Below are positions 2,677-47,030 of a stretch of 64,000 nt of DNA, in pieces (position 1 is the first letter of the stretch; the number at the start of each line of letters is the position of its first letter). The notes beneath the pieces were generated by a model. The model had not been told where the DNA came from. It made no database searches and was given only the letters and a program-made list of their open reading frames with translations. This stretch comes from Chlorokybus atmophyticus (Eukaryota; Plantae; Mesostigma and Chlorokybus algae): the NCBI GenBank assembly GCA_009103225.1, contig RHPI01002438.1:186001-250000 (forward strand). The letters are read 5' to 3'. Made by a program: the position numbers and the translations under genes.

Positions 2677-3542
2677 GATCACATTGATCGCATGGATTAC
2701 ACGGACCACGCTAATCACACTGATCGCACTGTAAAGTCTGCTGAACTCAACTGAGCCATAAAGTATACGGTCACCCGGCTACACTTGTGTCCTCCCACAT
2801 CGGATGGTATGCGGTGGGTCGTGGGATTGTGGGCGTAACGCAGCTCTTCAGATCTGTGTGCTGCATGCATGCGACAGAGGCACTGAGCTGGTCAGCGGCG
2901 GGGAAGGGGCGGGGGCGGAGGCGGCCAGGGCATACGGCATAAGGAGCAGGGTTTTGGAAACTGGTGACCCCACTGCTTGAGACGTGTCGCCATAACGCTT
3001 CTATGCCTTGAAACTCAGACCAGCTTGCCTGGTGGACCACCAATGGTGGTGGTACTGCTGCTACTGAGCTAAGCAGAGCAGAGCAGAGCAGTACAGAGCA
3101 GAGCTAAAACTGCTCTGCACCGCAATCAGATTCTGCTTCGCGCTTTGAGCGCCTTGGCAAGGCCGATTCCGCCCAACATCTTGTCGCCTCCACTGGCTCG
3201 GAGTGACAAGCACAAGCATTACTCGAAGCATGATGGTCAAGCACATACAAGCATTGCTACGCGCTCCCGTAGGAGATTCGCCGTCTCCTGATTGCTAATT
3301 GCTCTTTTAAAGTGCTTCTATAGTGTAGCTTTGAGCTTTCTTGTTGATTAGGGGAAGAGCAGACAGCTGCTGCTTAGCAGGCTTCCGTTGCATTCAGTAC
3401 GCAAAAGCGACTGCTTCTACTGCGGTAGAGCAGTACCATTAGCTTGTATGATTGTGCAGAGACTACAGCTCTTTTATACGTGCAAACAGCACTAGCCTAC
3501 TCAAGGTAGCACAATCATAATCTCAAGTACAGCGAGCACGGC

Positions 3543-11122: not shown

Positions 11123-14100
11123 TCACAACGACACGCGCACTTTGGGTCGCCTCTTGCGGATGGACTTGCGCACTGCAGCTGGGACTTCAGCTTCGGTCCC
11201 TCGACGACCGTGATACGAGTAGTACTTGAGACTGGTATCGCTGTCATAAATGGCCGAGCGCTCCGGCACATTGCAGGACGCCTCAGTCTCATCCCACGTG
11301 TTAAGAGCACAATGCCACACCTGTAGGACCCACTCGAGCATCAGCATGCAACCCTCATGCAAAACCACATGTTATAACATCTGACACAACATGGCATACC
11401 CCCGGCAGATCTTTGTGGTGCACGTGCGAAGGCAGTTGCCTCCACTTGTTGCACTTCTCGCACTGCACCCACTTCTCCTGATCCTCGTCGTCGCTGCTGA
11501 GGGTGGCCTCGTCCTCCTCCTCGTCCTCGCTCATGGCCTCCTGCGGCTGCGCGCAATCGGCGTATGCGGGGTTCCAATCGTTCATCTCGCAGAACCAAAG
11601 GGACGGAAGCTGCGAGGCTCGCAGGCCGGGCGGAAGCCGCCTCCACTTGCGACACGCGCGCCGGTCGCACTGAACCCACTGCTTCTCGTCCTCGCTACTA
11701 TAGCTGCAACACAACATACAAGATGAGTATGTGAAAACACGCATCCTCGTAAACACACTCACATGCCCATGCCTTACTTTTCTTCGGCTGTTTCACATGT
11801 GGCGTGTTCTGGATCCCACACGTTCAACGAACACGTCCAATGGTCGGGTAATGCCCCGTCTTCGACATGCGATGGAAGGCGACGCCATTTTCTGCACGCC
11901 TTGTTGTCGCATTGAACCCATTTGCTACCCCACTCATCTTCTGAATTTGTGTCGCTGCCGCCCCCCGATGTGGTTGTCTTGCGCCGCCTCCTACCGCGCC
12001 TTCTTCTCCTTCGAGACCGCGGATACATGTCGGGCTTGGCACAACTATTATGGTCTTCATCCCAAACATTCATCTCACAAAACCTGCATTGCCATGCATG
12101 ACTAGATGTCAGACACTGAAGCACACTCACACAAGGGTATGACAACAATAAAGCTTAACGAGAGAAGCTAACAAGCAAGAGCACAACATGTAGGCACACG
12201 TACCATATGGCTGGCAACTCTGATGCATCAACACCGCAAGGCAGCCGGCGCCATTTGCCGCACGTCCTCCGATCGCATTGCACCCAGATGCCGCCTTGAC
12301 TTGCGTGTTTGGTCTTGACGTCAACATCACCAGAGTGCGCCCGCCTGCTCCTGGAGCTCTCCCCTCGCACGCGAAGCGCGTATGTGCAAGTTGCCGGACG
12401 CTGTCGTGAAGCCGCGGCACCTGTTGAATCACCGCCTGCGCTAACAGACCTGCGGCGCCTCTCTCTTGTCCTACGCCTCGCCTCATGCTCCTGAAACCCA
12501 AGTGCATGTGTGTGTGCATGTGTGCGTGTGCGCGCGTGCGTGTGCACCACAGCTGCCAAGACAGAGCCTATTGGCTACTGACAACGTGTAACACTTGATG
12601 ACATCTTACACAAGCTCGCAGTATGCTTCTTGATCTTGATATCACCATCACTGTTCATGCCATTTACAAGCTTGCTTACTTGGACATGTGTCGTAACCTC
12701 CGTTAGTTCATGCCCGCCTCGGCACCCTCCATTCGGCAGTGCGCCCGCGCACTGAAACATGGAGTTGATTCCCCCTGCTGACGACGTGGACGCCGCGTTG
12801 CTGTGATCCGGATAGCACAGCGCCAAAGACACGACCGCGTGCGCCTCGGGCCCGCGGCCCCAGCCCTTGAAACGCACAACGCAGCAGTCGTCATGGGACA
12901 GCGGCGCTGAGGAAGGCCTGGACAGGTTGTTGTCCGTGTGGCCGATGATGACCTCCTCGACGACCGCATGGTAGTACTTGCCGTCGCTGCGACGCGCGAG
13001 GACGTCACGACCGACCACGGCGCCGACGCGAGCGTGCTCGCCCTTGCCATGAATGCCGGCCTGAACAAGATAAGATATCAGTCATGTGCTTGATGACCCC
13101 TTCCTGTACACAAGCCATGATGGCTCATAGCCTACTAAGCGAATACCTTTGGTTTGTCTTCTAAGCTCTCCGGGCGCAGTCCAACTATGCTGAAGCTCAA
13201 GTCTTCGGAGCAACTCACAAGAAGGTCGTCACCTCCATAGTTGCACCACGACAGATCCCTGCACACAGGTGAGAGAACCGTCAGGATGGCTTTGACTGCG
13301 TGTACAGAGGCTGCAGTGCACCGTAACACAGCTTAGTAGTTCGCATTGAGAGGGTGCAACATACCACACGCTGTTGGAGTGAAGCCACAACTGCTTCACC
13401 ATGGCGCCGCTATACGCATCCCACCATAGAACTCTACCATCTTCACTCGCAGCAGCAACGATTAGGCCATCAGGGCTAAACCTCGCATGCCCTATCAACA
13501 ACCACAACATAATCAGCTGATTGCAGTACTATCAACCGCTTAGATACATGTTGCCATGCGACGCCATGCGGCACAATGAGAGCAATGTAAAACAACATGG
13601 CAAAGCTGTCATTACATACCAGTGCCCCACGCAGCGTTGGTGTGACCGCGCAAGACAGTCCGCACTTGGACAGGGGAGGTGCCGCTAACCAGCTGCGCTT
13701 CATCAATGATGTACATTTCATTGGGCTCGCAATTCACCGCAAGCAACCTGGAAACCGGACTCCGGTCGATTGAGGTCACCGCACGCCCAACAGCGCAGTT
13801 CGACAAGCACGTCACACGCCCGTCTGCTGCGGCTCGAGGGAGTAGTGTACTGGAGCTTTCCGCTGTAAACAAGTTCTAAAGAGTTAGTGCGTGTGCAACA
13901 CCACATTGGGTCTGAACTGCAGCGTTTTGTTCCTAGTCACATGCCGTGATTTATGACAAGCCCACATGGACGAGCAACAGCGTGCAGAAACCCTCACTGA
14001 TGCACAGGAAGGCAACAGAACTTCATATCCACAAGCATGCAAACCTTGGGAGGCGCTGGAGGAAGCCCTTGAGGGTGAAGGTGCAACAACGACAGTGGTG

Positions 14101-21676: not shown

Positions 21677-23523
21677 TTAGTTTCTCAGCGTCCCCGCCCT
21701 CTTGTCGCTGCGCATCACCAGCGTCGCATACGTCCGCCGCCCCAGGTTGCCCACCGCCGGGGATCCGCAGAAGTACACCCACCTGCATGGACACAACAAC
21801 AGTAGTTACACAACCCAAGCACACAGTCCGCAGCGACAAGTACAATGACAACAACACAGTGCACCTCCCAGACTCACGGTATCCAGGTGGGCACGCCCAA
21901 CACGTCCGCATGCGTGTACGCGTACAACCCGCCGTAGTTGATCAACACGATCTCTATGACCGGGCCCGCGAATGCTGTCAACGTCGCCATGAACAGGCCC
22001 CCACCTAACGACATCATCAACACCACACTTGGTCGTGAACATGGCACACGCACACGCATGATTGTGCGTATGCATGTGTGTGCTGCCACACGCGCGCACG
22101 CACGCACGCGCGTCATACGCGCGCACATTGACAACCATAGTTGTGTGATGGTATTACGTGTGCGGTCGAGTAGCCACCAGGTGGCCACCGCGTAAGCCCC
22201 GAGCGTCAAGTCCACGCACGCTCTCGCGACGGGAACGGGTGAGGAGGATGGCAGGGCAGCGGCTTGGGCCAGCACGCCGCTCAGGCTGTACTGCGCCGCG
22301 AACAGAGCGATGCCGGCTGCAGATGGGGTGGTGATGTATTAATGATGTTGGGTTGGGGTTGAACCGACACTGATGTGGTGCATTGTATTGCGTATGGTGT
22401 ACAAAGGATCAGTATAGATCACGCATGCCTCAAACAGTGCATACACGCAAACGTGTATGCACTGATTGAGCTATATGTGCGTATGCGCGCACGCACATAC
22501 TCCTTTACTTTTGGTGCTTTGTAGCGAAGCAGCGTTGTCGAATGTGCATTGTGGTATACTGCAGTGATGCGTAAGCCACTGCAGCATGGTGGTGCGGTAA
22601 TGTGGATTCGTAGTAACTGTGTTTCATTCAGGCACACATCACACTGCACTGCACTAAACCAAACAGCGTACCCAACACGACGGGCCACCTCGGCTCCAGT
22701 CCCATCCTCGCCCCTCTGTCCCAACCTGTACCCACTCCATCCCTCTCGTCAGGTCCCAGGACCCAACGGTCCAGCAGCGGATGCGCCACGCCCAGTATGG
22801 CGCCCGCGACCCCGAACAGCAGCGGGACCCACCAGACGGACTCGAGTTCGTAAAAGGGACCCAACGTGATGTGCTACACAGGGAGAATGTTGAGGTGGGA
22901 GAGGAGATGTTGGAATGTTTCAACCCAGCATATTGTGATGCGTACCGCGGGGGAGGTGTAGTGGAGGACGTCGTGGCGGGAGTGCTCGCCGTCGAGGAGC
23001 GGGCCCAACACGGCACTGGTTGTGGGGAGAGAAAGCATACACGTGTATGTACAACACGCGCACATACACACATTGGGGGCGGGNNNNNNNNNNNNNNNNN
23101 NNNNNNNNNNNNNNNNNNNNNNNNNNNNNNNNNNNNNNNNNNNNNNNNNNNNNNNNNNNNNNNNNNNNNGGGGGGGGGGGGGGGCACGTAGACCCGTGCG
23201 TGACATTCAATGAGAATAATGAGGACAACGGCTCAGCAACCAACACGCGCTTGCTTGTTGGTTGCTTATCGACATTGCAGTGACAACACAGCTGTTATTA
23301 CCCGGATGCGAATGTTGCGACGGTCTGGCGCCAAAGCACGGATAGCGAAAGGGGGGATGATGATGATGATGATGAGCTTGTGATGGGGTTGTATGCGCGT
23401 CGGTTGGTGTGATGACGGCAGGGAGGCGAGTGTCTTGTTTTCCGTATCGGGTTGTTGGGCGCGATGGTGTGGCTTGTGTATGAGGTTGTTGGGTTTGAAC
23501 CGCAGTGCTGCGCGTCGATGCAT
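21677..23523 (-). CDS. Plant/algal INSIG-domain membrane protein, probably plastid-targeted; start uncertain, N gap inside
   Basis: Exons AVLGPLLDGEHSRHDVLHY, WWVPLLFGVAGAILGVAHPLLD, GLFMATLTAFAGPVIEIVLINYGGLYAYTHADVLGVPTWIP and VYFCGSPAVGNLGR match motifs I recall for plant INSIG-domain proteins. Confidence 0.75.
23084..23169. other. Assembly gap (N run) flanked by G runs
   Basis: N run seen directly. Confidence 0.95.
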
Positions 23524-24402: not shown

Positions 24403-26648
24403 TCAAGTGATGCGCTGTACACTCCAAGTGGTTAAGGGGCCAACGAGTAGTGGTTTGTGGGACTCATCACTTGCAAGGCTGCGTAGATAATGCTTTGTTT
24501 GCTGCAAGTAGGGTGCAACCACCTTATTTTAGCCCAAAATTCATACGCATGTGTACATGCATGTGTACAGGCAATGCAAGTGATGTATGCCACAAGCAGC
24601 GCCACATGCATCGTGCACAACCACATAGGCATGCAGCGTGCATGACATGGTGAAACTTAGGGCTCATGCCAGCCCGAGTCCACTGCATAGCCTGACTCCT
24701 TATTTCCTGAACCATTGTCCTAGATTTGACCACCTCTTTCCAAACACCTACGACAGCATTCACAAGATTCCACTACGTCACAAGGCTACTAGTGTTGTTG
24801 GCTACTGTTGTCACTAAACAACATTGTCAATACACAATGTTGACATACATCGACTATCACCAATACTGGGTGTTGATCATTGCACCTAGTCATCATGCTC
24901 GACACAGCAAGCCCTCACTCAGACTGCCACTGATACGCACATGCGCGTGCCATGCCAGTTGGAACCCTGCTGACCATGTCTAGCATGGCCCTGCAAGGTA
25001 GGTCACTACGGTGCAGACGTCCAAAGACGCTGACGCATGCACTTCATCTTCAAGCCTGTAGCGGAAGAGCAACGCTTTCGGTTGGTCCTGCGACTGTGTC
25101 CTGGCCTTAAAACCTGGAAGGAGGTTGGTATCAATAAACCATGCATGCTTGTGCACATACCTGCATGCTAGCAGACTTCCTCACCTCATTTGCAAGTCGC
25201 GCATGCATACCGCAATGCGCGACTTGCACTGCACACATGCACGCGCCAGCCACTGAGCAAAATGTTTTGCTCACCTAGGCGAGGGTACCAAAGCTTGGGA
25301 CTGCTGTACTGATATGATAGCATCATGCACCGTCATCCTCCACACGTATGGTTGCATGGTCCTTGTCACTTGCCTTCCTGCAAAGACAATGCGGACATTA
25401 GATAGTTGCCACATCGTATTCGCTGTCGCCACTAGTACTATAACTACTCAAGCAAAACCTTGCACGCAACTGGCAAGCACACAAGTAACAGATTGTGAAG
25501 TAACAAATGGCAGTACTACGACAATATTCGTGGCACAGAACCGCTGCTGTGTCAGAGAGATTCCCATTGAGATTTTGATCTTCACCCTTGCCTTTGTTGA
25601 AAGGCGAGTAAGATGTCCCTAATCTCGGTATCATCATCCACAGCCTTCGAGACCATGATTCATAAGCTACAAGGCTCCCATGCAAGACAACACTCAAGGG
25701 TCGTTTCATGCAAGTGGCAAGCGCACAAGAACAGACTCACGAATGATGCATGCGCAGACCCTGATGGCGCACGACTACTGCTGTGTCAGAGAGATTCCCA
25801 TTGAGACTTTGATCTTCACCCTTGCCTTTAATAAAAAGGCCAGTAAGATGTCCCTAATCTCGCTATCATCATCCACAGGATTGAGGACATGACTCATATG
25901 CAAGGCTGGCACGCAGAGACGACAAAATGACAACATTCGCACGCTCAGACTACCTTTGCAACATTTGGTAGTCTTCGAGGCCTCACTGGTTTGCTGCTTG
26001 CATGGCGTCAGAAAATGATTGCTTCTCAATAAACAGCGATCGCGGTCATACACTCAAAGATGAGGCCCCCTGCACGATGATACCTGCACAACACTGTAGG
26101 CTGTCAGAGCACTGTGTACACAAGCAAGAGGGCATGACAGTTCACAAGTCAAACACCCAACCATGCACGCACGCAATGCATGTAGTTAAGGCAAATCTAC
26201 TCAAGCAACTATGCCACCAGAGCCAGAACAACAACGGCGAACTACACAAGCGCTGTGCATTAAAGCGCTGAGCAGCCAGCGAGAAGCTTTCGCTACTACT
26301 CACTGCAGGCATGCAGTGGACGCTTGGCGGCTTGGTTTCAACAGCAGCAAGCACACCTGCCCAGAAGAAGGACACCGGACCACGACATGGTCAACTAGGA
26401 AGCGAGCTCCTTCAGTCAGTGTCTTGCTCTCTGTCTCGCTCTATGTCTCAGTCTGTTGGGCCTCACCTCTGGAAGCCTGTACAGGCCACGCTCAGCCGGC
26501 CGTCCACCCATGCTACCCTCATCGGCTCACAGAGCGACGCCCTCCGCCGCCCACGACATGTGCGCTGTTGGCGCCCAACGTCGTGCAGAGGGCAGAGTCC
26601 CACACATTCAACTACTGGCGCCAGCACCAACGCGGCCGCCGCCACCAT
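24403..26648 (-). CDS. Hypothetical multi-exon gene with a transit-peptide-like first exon; model unresolved
   Basis: First exon MVAAAALVLAPVVECVGLCPLH...RGRRRASL ends at a strong AG|GTGAGG donor. Several later segments have good splice signals (GFKARTQSQDQPKALLFRY; GVWKEVVKSRTMVQEIRSQAMQW; LASDESHKPLLVGPLTTWSVQRIT*), but I could not join all phases. Confidence 0.35.
25544..25877. repeat. Tandem duplication: two ~100-bp copies, 234-bp period
   Basis: 25544-25642 and 25778-25877 are near-identical (ctgctgtgtcagagagattcccattgaga...catcatccacag), with a few substitutions and a 1-nt length difference. Confidence 0.9.
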
Positions 26649-26696
26649 CTCAGCCACGGCCGCCGCCGCCGCCACCGCCGCCGCCAAAGCAAAGTG

Positions 26697-26707
26697 TTAG
26701 GGTTAGG
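26697..26707. promoter_or_regulatory. Telo-box-like motif in the divergent promoter upstream of ARP7
   Basis: ttagggttagg between the two divergent start codons. Confidence 0.4.
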
Positions 26708-26798
26708 AATTGAGTTTTCCCGCCTAAAAGCAGGCCAGGCAAGGCCAGGCTAGGCTAGGCTAGACCAGGCCTGGGAGAAGGTGGAGGAGAGCAGGTGG

Positions 26799-29675
26799 AT
26801 GGATCCGGCGGTGTTGGACAGCGGTTCGGGTGTGTGCAAGGCCGGGTTCGCCAGCCCCGAGGGACCTCCGGCCGTCGCCGCCACCGCCGCCGTGCGCAGG
26901 GCCGAGGGGGCGGAGGAGGACGCAGCGTGGGTGTGGCCTGTCCAGCGTGGACAAGTGAGTACAAGAGGTGTAACCATTGTGCTTCTGAATTGTGTATGGT
27001 TTTTTCTTCGTGTTCTTGGTGTATGCCCTTCTGCAACGCTCGATGTTGTGACATTGAGGACAGCAATGCAAGCTCGGTCGCTTGCGCTAGATGTAGTACG
27101 ATGGATCTGCTATCGTCTCAGCATTCCACCAGTCACTTCAGCAGTCTCACTCAGCTGTGTGCAGCTTCCTGCTCAGTTGTTGTGCAAGCACAACAACTGA
27201 CATGAGGCAGCGAGCAAAACACTCACAAAAGGGGTAGTTAGCCTGCACCTGTCACACCACCACTCCCATGCACACGCTGGATTCCAGTCCTTAAGTGCCT
27301 GGGGTTTGGTTGTCAATGTCACTTGTATGTGCATGCTCGCGTAAAGCTGTGCTATGACGTTTGGCCAGGTTGTGGCCTGGGGTGAGGCGGAGGCGCTGTG
27401 GAGGTGGGCGCTGTACGAACAGCTGGGTTGGGTGGAGGGCGAGGAGGGACCGCTGCTGCTGACAGAACCAGCGCTCACCTCCAAGTACGCACGCGAGCGC
27501 GCCACACAGGTGCAATTGTTGATTTGAGTCTCGGAAGCCCACATGCACTTTGCTGCAGAACGCTCACGAATGCAAGAGTGCCACATACGCAGCAACTGTC
27601 ACAATGAACAGAGCAGCAAGCAGGAAGGGGAAGAGCTGTATGCATCAAAGCCCATGTGTTCTTAAACGCGCTTTGTTTGTCAATAGCAGCTTGCAAGGCT
27701 TTGGCCCAAAGCAAGTGCACTTAGTACAGTTACCAGAGATATTGTGCCCCTGCGTGCGTCCGTGCGTGTGACCTATGGCTCATCCTTGGAGCTGACAGGT
27801 GTTGTTTGAAGACTTCAACGTTGCGGGCTTGTACATTGCTGAGCAAGCCCCGATCTCGTGCTTTGCGGTCGGCCGGCTGACCGCCACAGTCATCGACATC
27901 GGCCATGGCAAGATCGGTGCGTCTCATGTTTCCCTCTGTTGTGTTGTAATTACGCTGTGCAGTGGTATGCCACATTGTGCTACTCCTCACTGAACAATGC
28001 TGTGATATGCCACACTGCATATCATTTCTGCACCAATGTGCATACCTTACTACACTACACTGATGTATATACAGCACTATTGAAACTTTATTTGCTGCAC
28101 TACACTGTACTGCACTGTGCTGCCCTGTGCTGTGCTGCACATTGGTTTTGCATCTATGGTACGCTACACAGTACCATGGCATGCGTATAGCGCAGTATAC
28201 GACACTGCACTACAGCATACTATGTACTTAGAATCCTGTGCGGTACTTCATTGTTGTTTGCCTGTGTTGTACTGTACTCAACTCTGCAGTACTACACCTT
28301 GCTGGGAACGGTGCTACTACTCTAAACTCTCTTATAGCACATAGAGTCCTGTACAGTCACATGTGACACAGTATGGTATAGTGACTGATCCAAAGTGTAC
28401 TGTTTGCTTGTTGATTGGATAGTCTTCATATCTTACTCGTTGACAAACTCAACGTGGTGGCTTTGTTGCACCAGACATCGTGCCGGTCGTGGAGGGCGTG
28501 GCGGTGTCGAGTGCTGCGCAGCGCCTGCGATTGGGCAGCGGAGACATCACGGACATGCTCATGCGCGAGCTCGGGAGACGGGGCCACACGGTCGACACGC
28601 ACGCTGCCATGGACCTCAAGGAGCAGATCTCCAAGACGGCCGCGTCGGCCTCAGATTATGACCGACTTCGAAGTGAACCAACCGATGGCGCCGCACCAAT
28701 GCAAGAGGTGGTAGTTTGTGTTTTACTGGGTTGCCTTGTGCATGCGTGCGTGGGCGTGTGCGTGTGTGTGGCACACGCCCACAATTGCACATGCTTGTGT
28801 GCTGAATGACCGTGTTGCAGTGGTAAACGTGTGCTGTGTTGGTGTGTGTGCATGTGCTGTGTTGGTGCATGTGTGTGTGTGCAAACGCTGCAGTGGTCTG
28901 TGCGTGTGCGTGCTGCTAACGTACAAGCTCTATTGTGTACAACAATGTTGGTTTACAACCCTAACTGACCAATGACCCAATGCAGGAAGAGCACACATTG
29001 CCTGATGGTCAAATCATCAGAACAGCGCGCGAGGGTTGGGACTGCGGGGAGGCGCTCTTCCGTCCGGCAGACTTTCTCGGGACGGAGTATGCGGAGTACT
29101 GCCTGCCCATAGCCGTGTACAACAGCATCATGAGCTGTCACATGGACCAGCGGCGCAACCTGTTTGAGAACCTGCTGCTTTGCGGAGGGTGCTCCACCAT
29201 ACCTGGTAAGAGAATAGGTCTCGTGTTGCGTGTATGCTAAGGGTGGAAGTTGTTTCGTGTGGTTTGTGACTGTCGTGTATGGCGCTGCTTGGTCAGGTTT
29301 GCCGGAGCGGTTTCTTAGTGAGATAAGCGACCTGGCTCCGCCTTCTTTTCGACCTGCACTTGTAAAGGTACGTCCCAGTTTCAGCAAGTGTGGATATGTT
29401 GCACCATGTCATGTGTGTTTGGAGAAACAAGTTGTTCACACGCCAGCACTGTTGATCTTTCCAAAGGGCGGGCAAAGCGTCTCGTGGCTATAATTGTCAA
29501 CACTGGCACATTTGTTGTGCAGCCTCCAGAGTACATGCCGGATGCGACACTGCAGTTTTCAGCTTGGATTGGAGGCGCCATCTTGGCCAAGATAGTCTTT
29601 CCACAAAATCAGCACGTCACCAAGTTTGACTACGACGAGACAGGGCCTGGGGTTGTACATAGGAAATGCTTTTGA
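26799..29675 (+). CDS. ARP7: Actin-related protein 7 (plant nuclear ARP)
   Basis: MDPAVLDSGSGVCKAGFA; VIDIGHGKI; EEHTLPDGQII; the C-terminus PPEYMPDATLQFSAWIGGAILAKIVFPQNQHVTKFDYDETGPGVVHRKCF* is diagnostic of plant ARP7. Confidence 0.93.
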
Positions 29676-31182: not shown

Positions 31183-31239
<57 letters not shown>

Positions 31240-35273: not shown

Positions 35274-35507
35274 NNNNNNNNNNNNNNNNNNNNNNNNNNN
35301 NNNNNNNNNNNNNNNNNNNNNNNNNNNNNNNNNNNNNNNNNNNNNNNNNNNNNNNNNNNNNNNNNNNNNNNNNNNNNNNNNNNNNNNNNNNNNNNNNNNN
35401 NNNNNNNNNNNNNNNNNNNNNNNNNNNNNNNNNNNNNNNNNNNNNNNNNNNNNNNNNNNNNNNNNNNNNNNNNNNNNNNNNNNNNNNNNNNNNNNNNNNN
35501 NNNNNNG
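35274..35507. other. Assembly gap (N run) flanked by G runs
   Basis: N run seen directly. Confidence 0.95.
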
Positions 35508-40118: not shown

Positions 40119-42951
40119 CTACAGCTTGAGTCCTGCCATGGCTTCCGACATGGAAGACAAGTCCCAAAGTACCATTTTACCATCAAGCCCTGCACCACAA
40201 GACTGGCTTAGGACAGGCTGCAATAGGATGCGATGCATGTTCGCATTTTCTACATGCTGTTTTGCTGACCTGTTGTTGAAAACCGTGTGACAGCTGATGC
40301 TCCTGCCGCGCCAGTGGACTGTATAGACCTGCATGCAGGTACATTAGCATTACATAAGCAGTGTGTAGCGTTAAAATATGCATGCGCACACATGCACCCG
40401 TACACACCAGTCACATCCAAACATGCATGTGCCCTTGCGCACAAATGCCCACAGACAGAGAGACAGAGAGAAAGAGACAGACATAGACGCAGACCCAAGC
40501 ATGTGCGCACGTGCGCACACACACTCACACAGAGAAAACAGTAGCACGCAGCACACATTGCTGTAGTATGAGTTGAGTTTGCTCACGTGATGCAATTGTG
40601 ATGCGCTGTACTCGGCTCCTCCGCAGGCTCCTCAGACTGCCCGCGCTCTGTCTGTCCATGGAACTTTTTCAAAGCGGAGGCAAACTGCACCACAACATGC
40701 CCCTCAGATGCATACGCATAACACACATGGATTGTGATGTTATAGTGCATCACACTGCAACGGAGTTCAACAATGGTGATGATGACATCAGCAACATTAC
40801 TCGTTCTTATACCTGTGACCCCTGCTTGGAAGAGGCTTCCGTAGTTTTCGGCTCGTCAATTAACCGCAAGACCGACCTGCGAGAGGAGTGCCACATGAAC
40901 ACAACAACGCAGATTCGCGTATGATATGCGTCATCCCCTTCACTCCCTCCTTCACTCCTCGCCCCCCACACGCGCGCGCGCGCACACACAATCACTCACC
41001 ATTTGCCGCTCACGTCCTCTAGAAGAATGGGATTCTGCTCAAAGCCCACCGCCACCGCCCTTGTCTCAGACAGAAACAAAACCTGGTAAATCCAACCAGA
41101 CTTTGATTGCAATCAACATGTACCTGCTCATTTGCTTACACACTTCAATGATACATGCAACCTACGCCGCAAGTGATTAAACAGACACTACAACTCACGT
41201 CTTTGCAAGGCAGGTAGGGTGTCTGCACGCACTCTGCGGCTTCTGAAGCCCCCAACTTGTTCACAAAGTAAACTCCTGAGTCGTGGCCTGCATTGACACA
41301 AATACTGTTTTCCAAGGCACAGTCGCAGCGGCTTATGTGGTTGCCAACAACACGCCCCAACATCGCACATACCAATGAAAGCCAAGCGCCCTCCCGAAGG
41401 TGAGAACCGGACGCCGTGGACCCAACACGATGCTTCATACTGAAACAACACCTGAGCACGTATGTATGAATATTGACAATCAATTCATCAGGCATTGGCA
41501 TGTGAACTGATGTCAGTTCACTTACATACCTCCCCAAACTTGCCCTGGCCATATGGTGTCTCCCCCTCTCTGTCGCATTAAGAAACACATGCACGTCACA
41601 TGCTTTTGCATCATCCGGTTGAACTCTGTTGATGATAATAACGACACTAAGCTGCCAACAGTGCTGTGTGCGTGTTGACCTGTCAACTCCTGCAATGAAT
41701 GCATTGAACACCCGGCACTTGTTGTCGCTCGATGCAGTGGCCAACAAAACCTGCATGAGCACATATTCCAGTTACGTAGCTCTTATGCGTCAACTCTGAA
41801 TCACCGATTGTAGCATTGCATGGATACGCACGTTGTTTGGGTGCCAAGCCACTGCCAGAACCGTGGAGTTGTGCTTTTTCCTGATCTGCTTGCTGACCCA
41901 CCTGCAAATTGTATGTCGCACACGACAACTTGGTTTGAATACGAACACAATTCTTTGCTCACAACATGATCCCTCCACTCTGTGCAAGTTGCAAATGATT
42001 GAAAGAACTGCATGCAGAGTGCAGTTTACCAGTTGTTGGCCACGTCAAAGTAGCACACGCACGCGCTCTTTGCGCTGCTGCCAACAGCAAACTTTGTCTC
42101 TGCCGCCAACAAAGCAACTCAATGCATGAAAACTTTGAAGGTACAATGCAACTTGAAGCTACAATGCAGCATGTGCGCCCACACCAATGCGCGCGCTTCT
42201 GCGTCTAGGTGACGTCCTTGCAAGCGTGTATGAGAGACAGTGTGTCTACGCATGCGTGCAAGCATGTGTGTGTCAACGTATACATACCGTCAGGCGTCCA
42301 TCGCACGCAGACAGCTGCGCGATCCAATCGTAGCAGCACGAGCGTCGGTTGCCACACGCCCTCTTCCTTAGACAAACTCCACACGTACCTATTACAACAT
42401 TGCAACAGACGGTGTGAGACAAACAGGGTTGAGTTACTACAATTGACTGCTGCTGTTGCTTACGCATTGCGATCATGTGAAGCCGTCACGATTCGGTTGG
42501 TCGTTGGAGCCCAGTCCACGCCAGCAATCACTTGATCATGCTGTATAACATCACTGTTTGAATACTCATCATCAACTGCAAGCTTAGGTGCATGTGTGTA
42601 TACGTGGCTATTCGCGCGCGTGCAGGTACATGTGGTTATGTGTGCGCACATATGTGCACCTCTTTGAGGACGTGCTGGCGCTCCCACACAGTGGCAGCAT
42701 TGCTGTTGGTGCGTGCGTCGGCCGTGTAAATATGCAGCTCGCTGTTGTTGGGGCAGATGGCCAGCACTGACCACGGCACGTGCATACCAGTGAGCAACGG
42801 TATATAAACACATGCACCAAACCATGGTTTTGCGCCTGTGTTGTTGTGTGATGCAATTGTCAGCTTGTAGGTCTTGCTTACGTGTGCGGTCGGCATTCCA
42901 TGCGTGGCAGCTGATTGTGCTTGCCAGCTGTTGAACCCTTACTACTGCCAT
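40119..42951 (-). CDS. ARPC1: Arp2/3 complex subunit 1 (p41-Arc, WD40)
   Basis: ISCHAWNADRT; HDQVIAGVDWAPTTNRIVTASHDRNA; WQPTLVLLRLDRAAVCVRWTP; WVSKQIRKKHNSTVLAVAWHPNN; LLATASSDNKCRVF; ends GLDGKMVLWDL...GLKL*. Confidence 0.92.
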
Positions 42952-43892
42952 CTGCGGAGCTCTTTACACATATGCGCATGTCAGTACACGCGTATGCTCG
43001 CAACACGTACCACACACGCATACGCATACGTGCGCACACACAAAACTATTTTGCTGCACAGTCCTGACGTGGCATGCACGCATCATCGCGTTGCGTTGCT
43101 CTTTGTCTGCCTGGACTAACCAGGAAAGTAAGCCAGAAAAAATCACCACACACGAGCAGAATGCCAATGCGTTTGCTATGTCCCCACAGGCATCTTTTAC
43201 TCCTGTACAAGCGCGAGTAGTGCACAGGGCTGAGAATGAGAAAAAGAAGTATGCGAGTACTAGTCTCACCTCACTCAGTTGGTCATGTAGCGCCCTCTTT
43301 CCCTGCTCCCTTCCAGCCTCGAGAGCAACTACAACCAAGCTACCAAGTGTTGACGGAAATTCAGGCACTGTCCAATACCCGCCCACATTGCCTCAGCCTT
43401 GGGCTATTTTTAAATGCGGACAAGCTTCTTGCAACCTTCCGTAGAGATGATGCTCGTACACTTCAAGCTGTTAACCCTAAGATAGAATGTGTGTGCGCAT
43501 TCGCATGAGCTTGCTTCCAGTGATCACACTTGGTGATCGTTGGAAGCAAGCAGCTAGGCTAGGCCTACGCTTAAACGCCCAAGCAACAAACCCGTAGCAA
43601 CACGCAGCAATCAAGCACCATCCCCCAAGCTCTCCTTCACAATCACACTCCACACACCCATGCACCTAGCCACGGACTTGTGCTTTTCAACTTAAGCCTA
43701 GGCGCCTTCCCAGAGCTCAGCTCGCAACAAACTTGGCAGCAGTCGAGAGAGAGAGAGAGAGAGAGAGAGAGCATCCTCTCGTAAAGCGCTGCTTGCCGCG
43801 GTGTACTTGAAGCTGGTGGCGAAAGAAATCAACCGAGTTTGACTGATTGTGTGTGCGTGTGTTTAACAGTGGTTGGTTAGTCGGAATGCAGG

Positions 43893-46191
43893 ATGCTGTG
43901 GGCGGCAGCGTCGGCGGCGACGTCGGTGTCGTCGTCGTCGTCGCTGGCCGCACGCAGTAGTAGGGTCTGTCGAGTTTGTTCAGCTGCAGCGAGGCTGCGC
44001 TGTCTGTCGAAGGGGCGGGCACTGCGGCAGGTAGTCGTCATGTCCACGATAAGCGACGCCGAATCAGCAGCTCTCTCCTCCGGGCCTGACCAGGCCTGGA
44101 AGGGGGAGCTGAAGGCGCAGGGGCAAGGGCACCTGTTGGATGCCCTGGATAAGCTGCAGTACAAGGAGAAAGACCCCTTAGGCATCCATGCCAGTGTTCT
44201 TGAGACGCAGCTGCGGAAGCTGGCGGAGCAGCTGCCCGCCTTGCTGAGAGCGGTGGATGCGTCCAGGCAAGCTCCCGGCAAGGAGGAGGAGGCGGCGCAC
44301 AGCCTGCTGCCGCCGGACAACGTCGCCACGCTGGCTCGGCGCACGGCCGATGATGTGGCGAGATGGAGGTCTATTGGGCTGAAGCTGCTAGCGGAGGGCA
44401 AAGTCGCTGTGCTGCTGCTAGCTGGAGGCCAGGTGAAAGAGAGTGCGAGTTCGAGTCTCTCCTTGCAAGCATGCAGCATGCATGCCGTCGTTGCGCAGTG
44501 CCTGCTGCATTGTCGGCTATCTATTGAGTAGCATTGTGTGTGTAAGTTGCATTGTGCTCGTGCACAGGGCAGCCTGTGCTGGATTGCAGATATGCTGAGC
44601 TTTGAGTGCATGTGAAGGCTGTCTTAGTTGCAGCATTGCATGGCGCAGTATAAAACTTCAACTACAACAAGCAAACAAAGCGCTATGCAGCTGCTTGTTA
44701 AGTGCAGATGGTAGGGCCAGCAGCAAATGACATGCGTGCTGTGACGTTAGGGCACGCGGTTGGGCAGCACTGCACCAAAGGGCTGCTACGGTGTGAACAT
44801 TGGGCTTGAGTCACGCACATGTGCCAAGTTTGCGATCCAGCTGGCACAACATGCAAACTGCTGATACTGCTGGAGTGGCGCTTTGCAGACATAGGGCTGC
44901 CGTCGCACAAGTCTCTCTTGCAGCTCCAAGCAGAACGGCTGCGCAGTCAGCAGTCTGCTGCTGGTGAGTGCAATACTACTGCGTTGTGTTCACGTTGTGG
45001 CATGTGCATTGCAATGACGCGCGCTGTGATAGCCCAACATAAGCCACATTGGCGCAGGCACTGGTACAATACCTTGGTACATAATGACCAGCTGGGCTAC
45101 ATACAGTGCGACAGAGGAACACTTTTTCCAGCACAAATTCTTTGGGCTGAAGGACTCTCAGGCATGAATAGTGAATAGGATGCTTGCAGGGAGTTTGTTT
45201 CACGGTATGTTTTCAGCTGTTGGCTGTCATACGCGCATTTGCTCATGGGTGTTACGTCTCTGTATTCAACAGGTACAGTTTTTCAAGCAAGGCGAGTTGC
45301 CATGCCTGACAGTTGATGACAAGGTCATCTTGGAAAGCCCAACAGAGGTAGTTAGCCAGGAAGGCATCTGTGTCTTGTGCGCTGGAGAACTTTGCATCGA
45401 AATGATTGCTTGAATTGGGTAAGCTGACTTTCTGGTTGCAGATCGCGAAGGCGCCAAATGGCAACGGTGGTGTATACCATGCGCTGCATCGCAGTGGGTG
45501 CTTGAAAGACATGCAAGAGAGAGGCGTTGAGCACATACACTGCTTTTCGGTAGACAACGCGCTGGTGCGTGTGGCCGACCCGGTCTTCATTGGATATTGT
45601 GTTGATCAGCAAGCAGATTGCGCAGCCAAGGTGGTAGCCAAGGCGTATCCAGCGGAGCGAGTGGGTGTGTTTGCCCGTCGTGCAGGCGCTTTGGGTGTCG
45701 TGGAGTACTCTGAGATGCCGCAGGCAGTCGCGACATCTGTGGATACGCGAACTGGAGAGTTAATGTACAAATGGAGCAACATATGTGTGCACTACTATTC
45801 GCGACAGTTTCTGGAAGCTATGGGCACACAGGAGCATCTGGCACAGTACCACCTTGCCGTCAAGGACATCCCATCTGTCACCGGAGTGGTGAAAGGTGTC
45901 AAGTTGGAGCAGTTCATCTTCGATGCTTTCAAGCACGCCAAGAAGATGGCGCTGTTTGAGGTTCTGAGGGCTGCCGAGTTTGCGCCTGTGAAGAATGCAT
46001 CTGGTGCTGACTCACCCGAGACTGCGCGCGAGTTACTGAGCGCGTTGCACCAGAGTTGGGTGCAGGCGGCTGGTGGTTCTATCAACGGCAGTGGGTTGGT
46101 TGAGGTTTCGCCCCTGCTCTCGTTAGAGGGTGAGCACTTACAAGAACGCTGTGCTGGACACGCATTCCAACCACCCATTGAACTTCGCTGA
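43893..46191 (+). CDS. UAP1: UDP-N-acetylglucosamine pyrophosphorylase (eukaryotic UAP1/GlcNAc1pUT) with an N-terminal organellar transit-peptide-like extension
   Basis: KVAVLLLAGGQ|GTRLG...PKG; DIGLPSHKSLLQLQAERL; PWYIMTS; APNGNGGVYHAL; VDNALVRVADPVFIG; KLEQFIFDAF; EFAPVKNA. Confidence 0.93.

Positions 46192-46969: not shown

Positions 46970-47030
<61 letters not shown>
46970..47030. repeat. (CT)n microsatellite
   Basis: Seen directly. Confidence 0.95.

Follow-up and report, generated by a model that had tools for sequence, protein, structure and literature searches.

The nuclear gene for UDP-N-acetylglucosamine pyrophosphorylase (UAP) of the streptophyte alga Chlorokybus atmophyticus may give rise to both an organelle-targeted long form and a cytosolic short form of the enzyme from one mRNA. 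The gene lies on the forward strand of a 64,000-nucleotide stretch of Chlorokybus nuclear DNA (contig RHPI01002438.1, positions 186,001 to 250,000), which is referred to here as the window and to which all coordinates belong. In front of the enzyme proper it encodes a 49-residue leader that resembles a transit peptide, followed by a second in-frame start codon, and an upstream open reading frame (uORF) overlaps the first of the two starts. We hold the two-form reading tentatively, as marginally more doubtful than probable.

In the mechanism that we propose, initiation at the first methionine (Met1, 43893) would yield a precursor whose leader acts as an organelle-import signal, with the plastid a likelier destination than the mitochondrion. 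Ribosomes that translate the uORF first would be carried past Met1 and could reinitiate 79 nucleotides further on, at Met50, which would also be reached by ribosomes leaking past both upstream AUGs, and the product started at Met50 would be the ordinary cytosolic enzyme used for glycosylation. We infer that the mature mRNA contains both AUGs and that each of them serves as a start, that the leader directs the protein to an organelle and that UDP-N-acetylglucosamine (UDP-GlcNAc) is consumed there, either by MurA and MurG of peptidoglycan synthesis or by lipid A-type Lpx enzymes.

The UAP gene and its N-terminal leader

By its sequence, the gene is a bona fide UDP-GlcNAc pyrophosphorylase of the eukaryotic type, predicted to act on N-acetylglucosamine 1-phosphate (GlcNAc-1-P) and UTP, and the identity given to it in a first-pass annotation of this DNA is confirmed. 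The rebuilt protein matches Pfam UDPGP (PF01704) over residues 169-509 with an E-value of 2.7e-48 and 165 bits against a cut-off of 22. In a search of the PDB the top 11 matches were all UAPs (E 1e-106 to 1e-56), whereas UDP-sugar (USP) and UDP-glucose (UGP) pyrophosphorylases reached only ~1e-11 to 1e-12. All of the UAP signature motifs (LxxGGQGTRLG, P(D/N)GNGG, EYxE, KxExFxFD and FxPxKN) are present in the model, and their residues occupy invariant columns of the UAP alignment (G178-G185, G285-G288, E366/Y367/E369, K432/E434/F438/D439 and F458-N463). Fold family and motifs are shared with human AGX1/AGX2 (1JV1/1JVD), the Aspergillus fumigatus enzyme (4BMA), Arabidopsis GlcNAc1pUT1/2 and rice UAP1/UAP2, and the solved UAPs match over residues 72-524 with E-values of ~1e-101 to 1e-106, but unlike the Chlorokybus protein these enzymes have no N-terminal leader. 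Rice UAP1 and UAP2 are predicted to be without targeting peptides and were observed in the cytoplasm (PMC8264299), and the Arabidopsis UAP enzymes are annotated as cytoplasmic or plasma-membrane proteins (PMC10951099). Identity to plant and algal UAPs is 47-52%, and the best non-self database match stands at 51%. No nearer relative of Chlorokybus was found among the UAP database matches or the metagenome contigs; the latter were scanned with the last exon for relatives close enough for conservation or substitution-rate (dN/dS) analysis and gave at most 53% identity over the full query, with 64% only in short segments.

The gene model was built by hand and fits well in an alignment with 27 homologues. 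Its six exons, all on the + strand, encode 527 amino acids and are separated by five introns of 94-318 nucleotides with the acceptors TGCAG, CGCAG and AACAG. Exon 1 (43893-44432, codons 1-180) ends in LLLAGGQ and is followed by exon 2 (44751-44790, GTRLGSTAPKGCY), supported by the alignment and left out of the Joint Genome Institute (JGI) model, exon 3 (44889-44963, starting DIGLPSHKSLLQLQAERL), exon 4 (45058-45161, IPWYIMTS...FFGLKDSQ), exon 5 (45273-45347, starting VQFFKQGELPCL) and exon 6 (45442-46191), in which APNGNGG, EYSE, KLEQFIFD and FAPVKN occur in this order before the stop codon. Intron 4 (45162-45272) is of the GC-AG type (CAG/GCATGA ... AACAG/GT); it has no frame-keeping GT-AG alternative and the homologue alignment is ungapped across the junction. 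The best database match to the gene is the EukProt protein EP00898_Chlorokybus_atmophyticus_P006821 (P0001 in our set; JGI Chlat1 Chrsp104S01295), which agrees with exon 1 at every one of its first 180 residues. This JGI/EukProt model of 475 amino acids mis-splices exons 2-4 (44433-45272) and is without the GGQGTRLG nucleotide-binding motif, which the six-exon model restores.

Met1 is the first ATG past an in-frame TAG four codons upstream and opens MLWAAASAATSVSSSSSLAARSSRVCRVCSAAARLRCLSKGRALRQVVV. Codons 1-49 (43893-44039, + strand) form the N-terminal extension that we regard as a candidate transit peptide, and Met50 (44040-44042, + strand; MSTISDAES) is a further in-frame start, placed where the orthologous UAPs have their N-terminus. 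No ATG occurs in any frame between the two (43896-44039). In nearly all of the best 120 homologues the LLAGGQG motif is 97-138 residues from the N-terminus, and here it is 174 residues from Met1 and 125 from Met50; the alignment with solved UAPs begins only at residue 72-75 of the model (and runs to residue 524), which corresponds to residues 11-41 of their own chains. By these distances and alignment limits, Met50 is the orthologous and ancestral start and codons 1-49 are an add-on, and the leader is wholly outside the conserved enzyme fold. Only one Chlorokybus UAP occurs among the best 120 matches, so the same gene presumably serves the cytosol too; within that set of matches, the second paralog that the first-pass annotation had suggested looking for is not present.

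The earlier description of residues 1-49 as rich in Ser, Ala and Arg, free of Asp and Glu and followed by Met50 agrees with both the sequence and its composition. The 49 residues comprise 11 Ala, 11 Ser, 7 Arg, 6 Val, 5 Leu and 3 Cys together with Met, Trp, Thr (1), Lys (1), Gly and Gln, and carry a net charge of +8. The first 20 residues are uncharged and Ser/Ala-rich, the first charge is R21 and the second half is Arg-rich. An uncharged Ser/Ala start followed by an Arg-rich half, all free of acidic residues, is the classical layout of a transit peptide, and the leader fits it in every one of these features as well as in its Ser/Thr/Ala content and its position outside the mature fold. No amphipathic-helix signal of a mitochondrial presequence was found in the leader: its maximal hydrophobic moment (0.42 in an 18-residue window at 100 degrees) compares with a shuffle mean of 0.45 (P=0.55), and Arg is absent from the first 20 residues. 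Since the first charge comes only at R21 and the helix signal is lacking, the leader looks more plastid-like than mitochondrial, and the mitochondrial destination offered earlier as an alternative is not favoured.

Upstream start codons and competing explanations

The uORF occupies 43886-43960 on the + strand, with its ATG at 43886-43888, 24 sense codons (MQDAVGGSVGGDVGVVVVVAGRTQ) and a TAG at 43958-43960, and is out of frame with the UAP coding sequence. It spans Met1 and terminates within the leader-coding region, 79 nucleotides ahead of the Met50 ATG, which bears out the earlier observation of a short frame that closes between the two starts. The upstream ATG (uATG) is only 7 nucleotides from Met1, in the context GGA-ATG-C. 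All three ATGs (43886, 43893 and 44040) have a purine at position -3, which is an A in the case of Met1. The density of ATG in the window is 0.022 per nucleotide, so that one ATG 7 nucleotides upstream is unremarkable by itself.

No ATG occurs from 43661 to 43885, a gap of 226 nucleotides that is the 14th longest of the 1427 in the window (top 1%) and has a probability of ~0.03 with intergenic composition. This stretch is the putative 5' leader (43663-43885, + strand), unless it is partly an intron of the 5' untranslated region (5'UTR), and its observed/expected ratio of AT dinucleotides is 0.23, compared with 0.97 window-wide. There is a precedent within the window, where a 241-nucleotide ATG-free stretch (26558-26799) ends at the start codon (26799) of an actin-related protein gene (MDPAVLDSGSGVCKAGF). 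The ATG-free stretch fits a 5'UTR that would lead scanning ribosomes to 43886 and 43893 before any other start; those passing both could reach Met50.

The same arrangement has been described in Arabidopsis ATP sulfurylase 2 (ATPS2), where an overlapping uORF accompanies a first start, M1, that gives a protein with a chloroplast transit peptide and further starts, M52/M58, that lead to a cytosolic isoform (bioRxiv 10.64898/2026.07.14.738309, PMC13405301). Ribosome profiling (Ribo-seq), in-vitro translation and green fluorescent protein (GFP) fusions demonstrated the uORF as well as the two isoforms and their two locations, and mutation of the uORF start shifted both the isoform ratio and the location of GFP (PMC13405301). 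Both genes have an out-of-frame upstream AUG in the leader whose reading frame crosses the annotated start and ends within the region coding for the (candidate) transit peptide, and in both an acid-poor N-terminal leader of about 50 residues is followed by an in-frame AUG just beyond it that gives, or would give, a leaderless cytosolic enzyme. They differ in that the ATPS2 system is experimentally shown, whereas the Chlorokybus UAP is known here from genomic sequence alone, and in that the uATG of the latter is only 7 nucleotides from Met1 and possibly intronic; the enzyme is also a different one.

The alternative that survives best, though we judge it rather unlikely, is that Met50 is the sole functional start. 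The 147 nucleotides upstream would then be a GC-rich, triplet-repeat 5'UTR or untranscribed DNA that is open by chance, the leader would be a product of longest-ORF calling, and the uATG and Met1 would be absent from the mRNA or would merely lower translation. Several results weigh against the two-form reading, and we set them out here and in the paragraphs that follow. The leader DNA contains 10.9% A, where the 5' leader has 25% and the remainder of exon 1 has 20%, and includes an imperfect trinucleotide repeat ((CGT)n / GCGTCGTCG; 43901-43943, + strand) encoding a run of Ser in the main frame, of Val in that of the uORF and of Arg in the remaining frame; it leaves two of the three frames open along its length. 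Stop codons and Asp/Glu codons are few because this DNA is A-poor and carries the repeat, and an open frame without Asp or Glu arose in 8% of simulations with the leader's own composition. Against chance, the same outcome was obtained in just 0.03-0.9% of simulations when the base composition was that of the 5' leader, of intergenic DNA or of the rest of exon 1, and Ser, Ala and Thr make up 48% of the leader in the main frame, compared with 31% expected from its nucleotide composition. The leader is thus only partly beyond chance.

Codon usage and the ATG gap are no more decisive. With training on the remainder of the gene, codon log-odds were +0.22 bits per codon in the main frame, +0.04 in the third and +0.34 in the uORF frame, with non-coding controls at -0.02 or below, which means that the region is coding-like in all frames, gives no preference to the main frame and scores higher in the uORF frame. 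Codon log-odds were dropped as evidence of main-frame translation, as they do not resolve the frame. The ATG gap is not significant with the dinucleotide composition of the stretch itself (P=0.33), a model that is partly circular. A sole start at Met50 is opposed by the facts that the 226-nucleotide ATG depletion stops exactly at the pair formed by the uATG and Met1, that Met1 has an A at -3 and that the extension is as long as a typical transit peptide and reaches precisely to the ancestral start.

Comparison with other UAPs favours Met50 alone. The leader is lacking in every land-plant and most of the algal orthologues compared. The peptidoglycan-bearing land plants Marchantia, Riccia, Selaginella and Diphasiastrum have UAPs without a leader, which start 22-26 residues ahead of the GQxH motif. 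Upstream in-frame extensions are not rare among the algal gene models, as five of the best 120 matches besides the window gene (P0002, P0003, P0018, P0037 and P0113) carry one ahead of a canonical Met or start position, and comparable extensions before the canonical Met are found in automatically called algal models (P0018, P0020 and P0113). Extensions of this kind occur in gene models of Trebouxia and Myrmecia and in some metagenome-derived models.

In Trebouxia, an upstream ORF of 55-56 residues before the canonical Met of UAP is kept in a spliced mRNA contig from Logan (L001, 820-990) and at three genome loci from two Trebouxia sp. strains (L002 and L003, ~3001-3170; L004, ~1330-1500). It shows one in-frame 3-nucleotide indel and more amino-acid changes than silent ones, and the adjacent upstream DNA, which is non-coding, is conserved to the same degree (~89%). 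As a sign of coding constraint the Trebouxia extension was rejected on both of these grounds. The extension is basic, its canonical Met opens MSSD..., and an out-of-frame ATG lies 5 nucleotides upstream of the extension ATG, a layout reminiscent of Chlorokybus. Two NCBI annotations of Trebouxia disagree on the start, one placing it at the upstream Met and the other at the inner Met.

Annotation and transcripts add little for Met1. The JGI model is the sole annotation that uses it and, being poorly spliced, is not independent support. Exact transcript look-ups of the 527- and 478-residue forms and of the exon-1 ORF gave no match, and a look-up of the JGI protein gave no transcript contig. A transcript homology search with residues 1-180 returned two weak matches and missed the identical P0001, so that this search is insensitive and its negative outcome carries no weight.

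Another alternative retains the long form and dispenses with the uORF. The TGCAG at 43887-43891 (+ strand), followed by G at 43892, resembles the real acceptors of the gene, and a 5'UTR intron ending at AG 43890-43891, which would delete the uATG, is plausible from the splice-site-like sequences present, in keeping with the caution voiced in the first-pass annotation. Two possible donors carry G at -1, namely GT 43801 (GCG/GTGTAC), which would give a 91-nucleotide intron close in length to the gene's introns of 94-111 nucleotides, and GT 43816 (76 nucleotides); a GTAAAG at 43781 would give a 111-nucleotide intron but has C at -1. Spliced in this way, Met1 would carry C at -3, a weak context favouring leaky scanning to Met50; alternatively, the long form alone could be made, with one part of it imported and the rest staying in the cytosol. 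The ARPC1-like neighbour of the gene has CGCAG right before its ATG and two ATGs upstream, suggesting that introns ending beside start codons may be common in this genome. On the other side, the splice signals were judged from just five introns, and removal of 43801-43891 would leave the ATG depletion of that stretch without an obvious cause. We consider a long form without participation of the uORF to be quite unlikely.

A further reading, in which the leader would be a presequence for mitochondria and the organellar isoform would supply the lipid A-type (Lpx) enzymes there, not plastid peptidoglycan, is improbable. The leader does contain many Arg and no acidic residues, the transit peptides of algae overlap with presequences, and UDP-GlcNAc is used by Lpx enzymes in plant mitochondria, but the hydrophobic moment does not rise above shuffles and the first positive charge follows a long uncharged Ser/Ala stretch of the kind more typical of plastid transit peptides. 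Some weight is lent to it by the leader-like extensions in Trebouxia and Myrmecia, of the core Chlorophyta, in which peptidoglycan genes have reportedly been lost to varying degrees (PMC7455551).

Alternative initiation giving cytosolic and organellar isoforms, as first suggested for this gene, is partly supported, by its layout, by the position of the leader outside the fold and by its ATPS2-like arrangement, and is weakened by the A-poor composition of the leader and by a codon usage that does not decide on the frame.

Neighbouring genes, repeats and assembly gaps

Tandem Repeats Finder detected a (GA)13.5 microsatellite at 43745-43771 (+ strand), within either the promoter or the leader. 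A matching (CT)30 microsatellite lies 3' of the UAP gene (46971-47030), and a third GA/CT run, (GA)23, is found at 31190-31235. Upstream of the UAP gene, its divergent neighbour is a WD40 gene of the ARPC1-like type on the minus strand, whose start region lies in 42880-43010 and whose ATG at 42951 is 941 bp from Met1. The CGCAG of this gene abuts its ATG, and its two out-of-frame upstream ATGs, 20 and 28 nucleotides away, represent either overlapping uORFs or part of a 5'UTR intron ending at the start codon.

Further away, several adjoining ORFs on the minus strand (11355-12560) encode multiple zinc fingers of the CW type (Pfam zf-CW, E 2.8e-25), next to a Tudor-like ORF at 12575-13018; together they are probably one multi-exon chromatin-reader gene. 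Assembly gaps are present as runs of N at 1194-1278, 23084-23169 and 35274-35506. An apparent low-GC block at 34-36 kb, with a dip to 32% GC, is not a feature and is explained by the last of these runs.

A possible organellar supply of UDP-GlcNAc and plastid peptidoglycan

In streptophyte algae, mosses and ferns, the synthesis of plastid peptidoglycan begins with UDP-GlcNAc. Bacterial GlmU makes the same product, the substrate of MurA and MurG, and is a bifunctional GlcN-1-P acetyltransferase and GlcNAc-1-P uridylyltransferase that follows the GlcN-1-P route and has a left-handed beta-helix acetyltransferase domain. Its architecture is unrelated to that of the protein encoded in the window, which is of the eukaryotic UAP type and whose action in the plastid is hypothetical. 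Streptophyte algae are reported to encode all ten core peptidoglycan enzymes (PMC7455551), and the source of stromal UDP-GlcNAc is unstated in the available papers on plastid peptidoglycan.

It is distinctly doubtful, in our estimation, that a host UAP isoform, with the split between the two forms governed by the uORF, makes UDP-GlcNAc for MurA and MurG in the plastid stroma and so replaces GlmU. A stromal UAP would, by our own reasoning, also require GlcNAc-1-P and UTP in the stroma, which speaks against this role, as does the cytoplasmic location of rice UAP1 and UAP2 (PMC8264299). The link to peptidoglycan and the replacement of GlmU, both put forward in the first-pass annotation, found no comparative support, given that the UAPs of peptidoglycan-bearing land plants are without the leader. 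If real, the leader would be a lineage-specific solution, and its connection with peptidoglycan is speculation. A precedent for an organellar branch of the hexosamine pathway is offered by Arabidopsis AGM/DRT101, the phosphoacetylglucosamine mutase that acts one step upstream, which is reported in cytosol, chloroplasts and mitochondria (PMC10951099). It is likewise a host enzyme of this pathway with an N-terminus said to be transit-peptide-like (PMC10951099), but it catalyses another step in another organism and its localisation comes from an overexpressed GFP fusion.

Should the leader be merely an open 5'UTR, what is left is an annotation caveat for the UAP gene. A UAP bearing a transit peptide would be a concrete and testable candidate for the supplier of stromal UDP-GlcNAc, a host enzyme completing the pathway of an endosymbiont. 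If the proposal is true, a eukaryotic enzyme would patch the cyanobacterial peptidoglycan pathway and a first answer would be given on the sugar-nucleotide source of plastid peptidoglycan, while dual targeting through an overlapping uORF, so far shown in Arabidopsis, would extend to one of the earliest-branching streptophytes.

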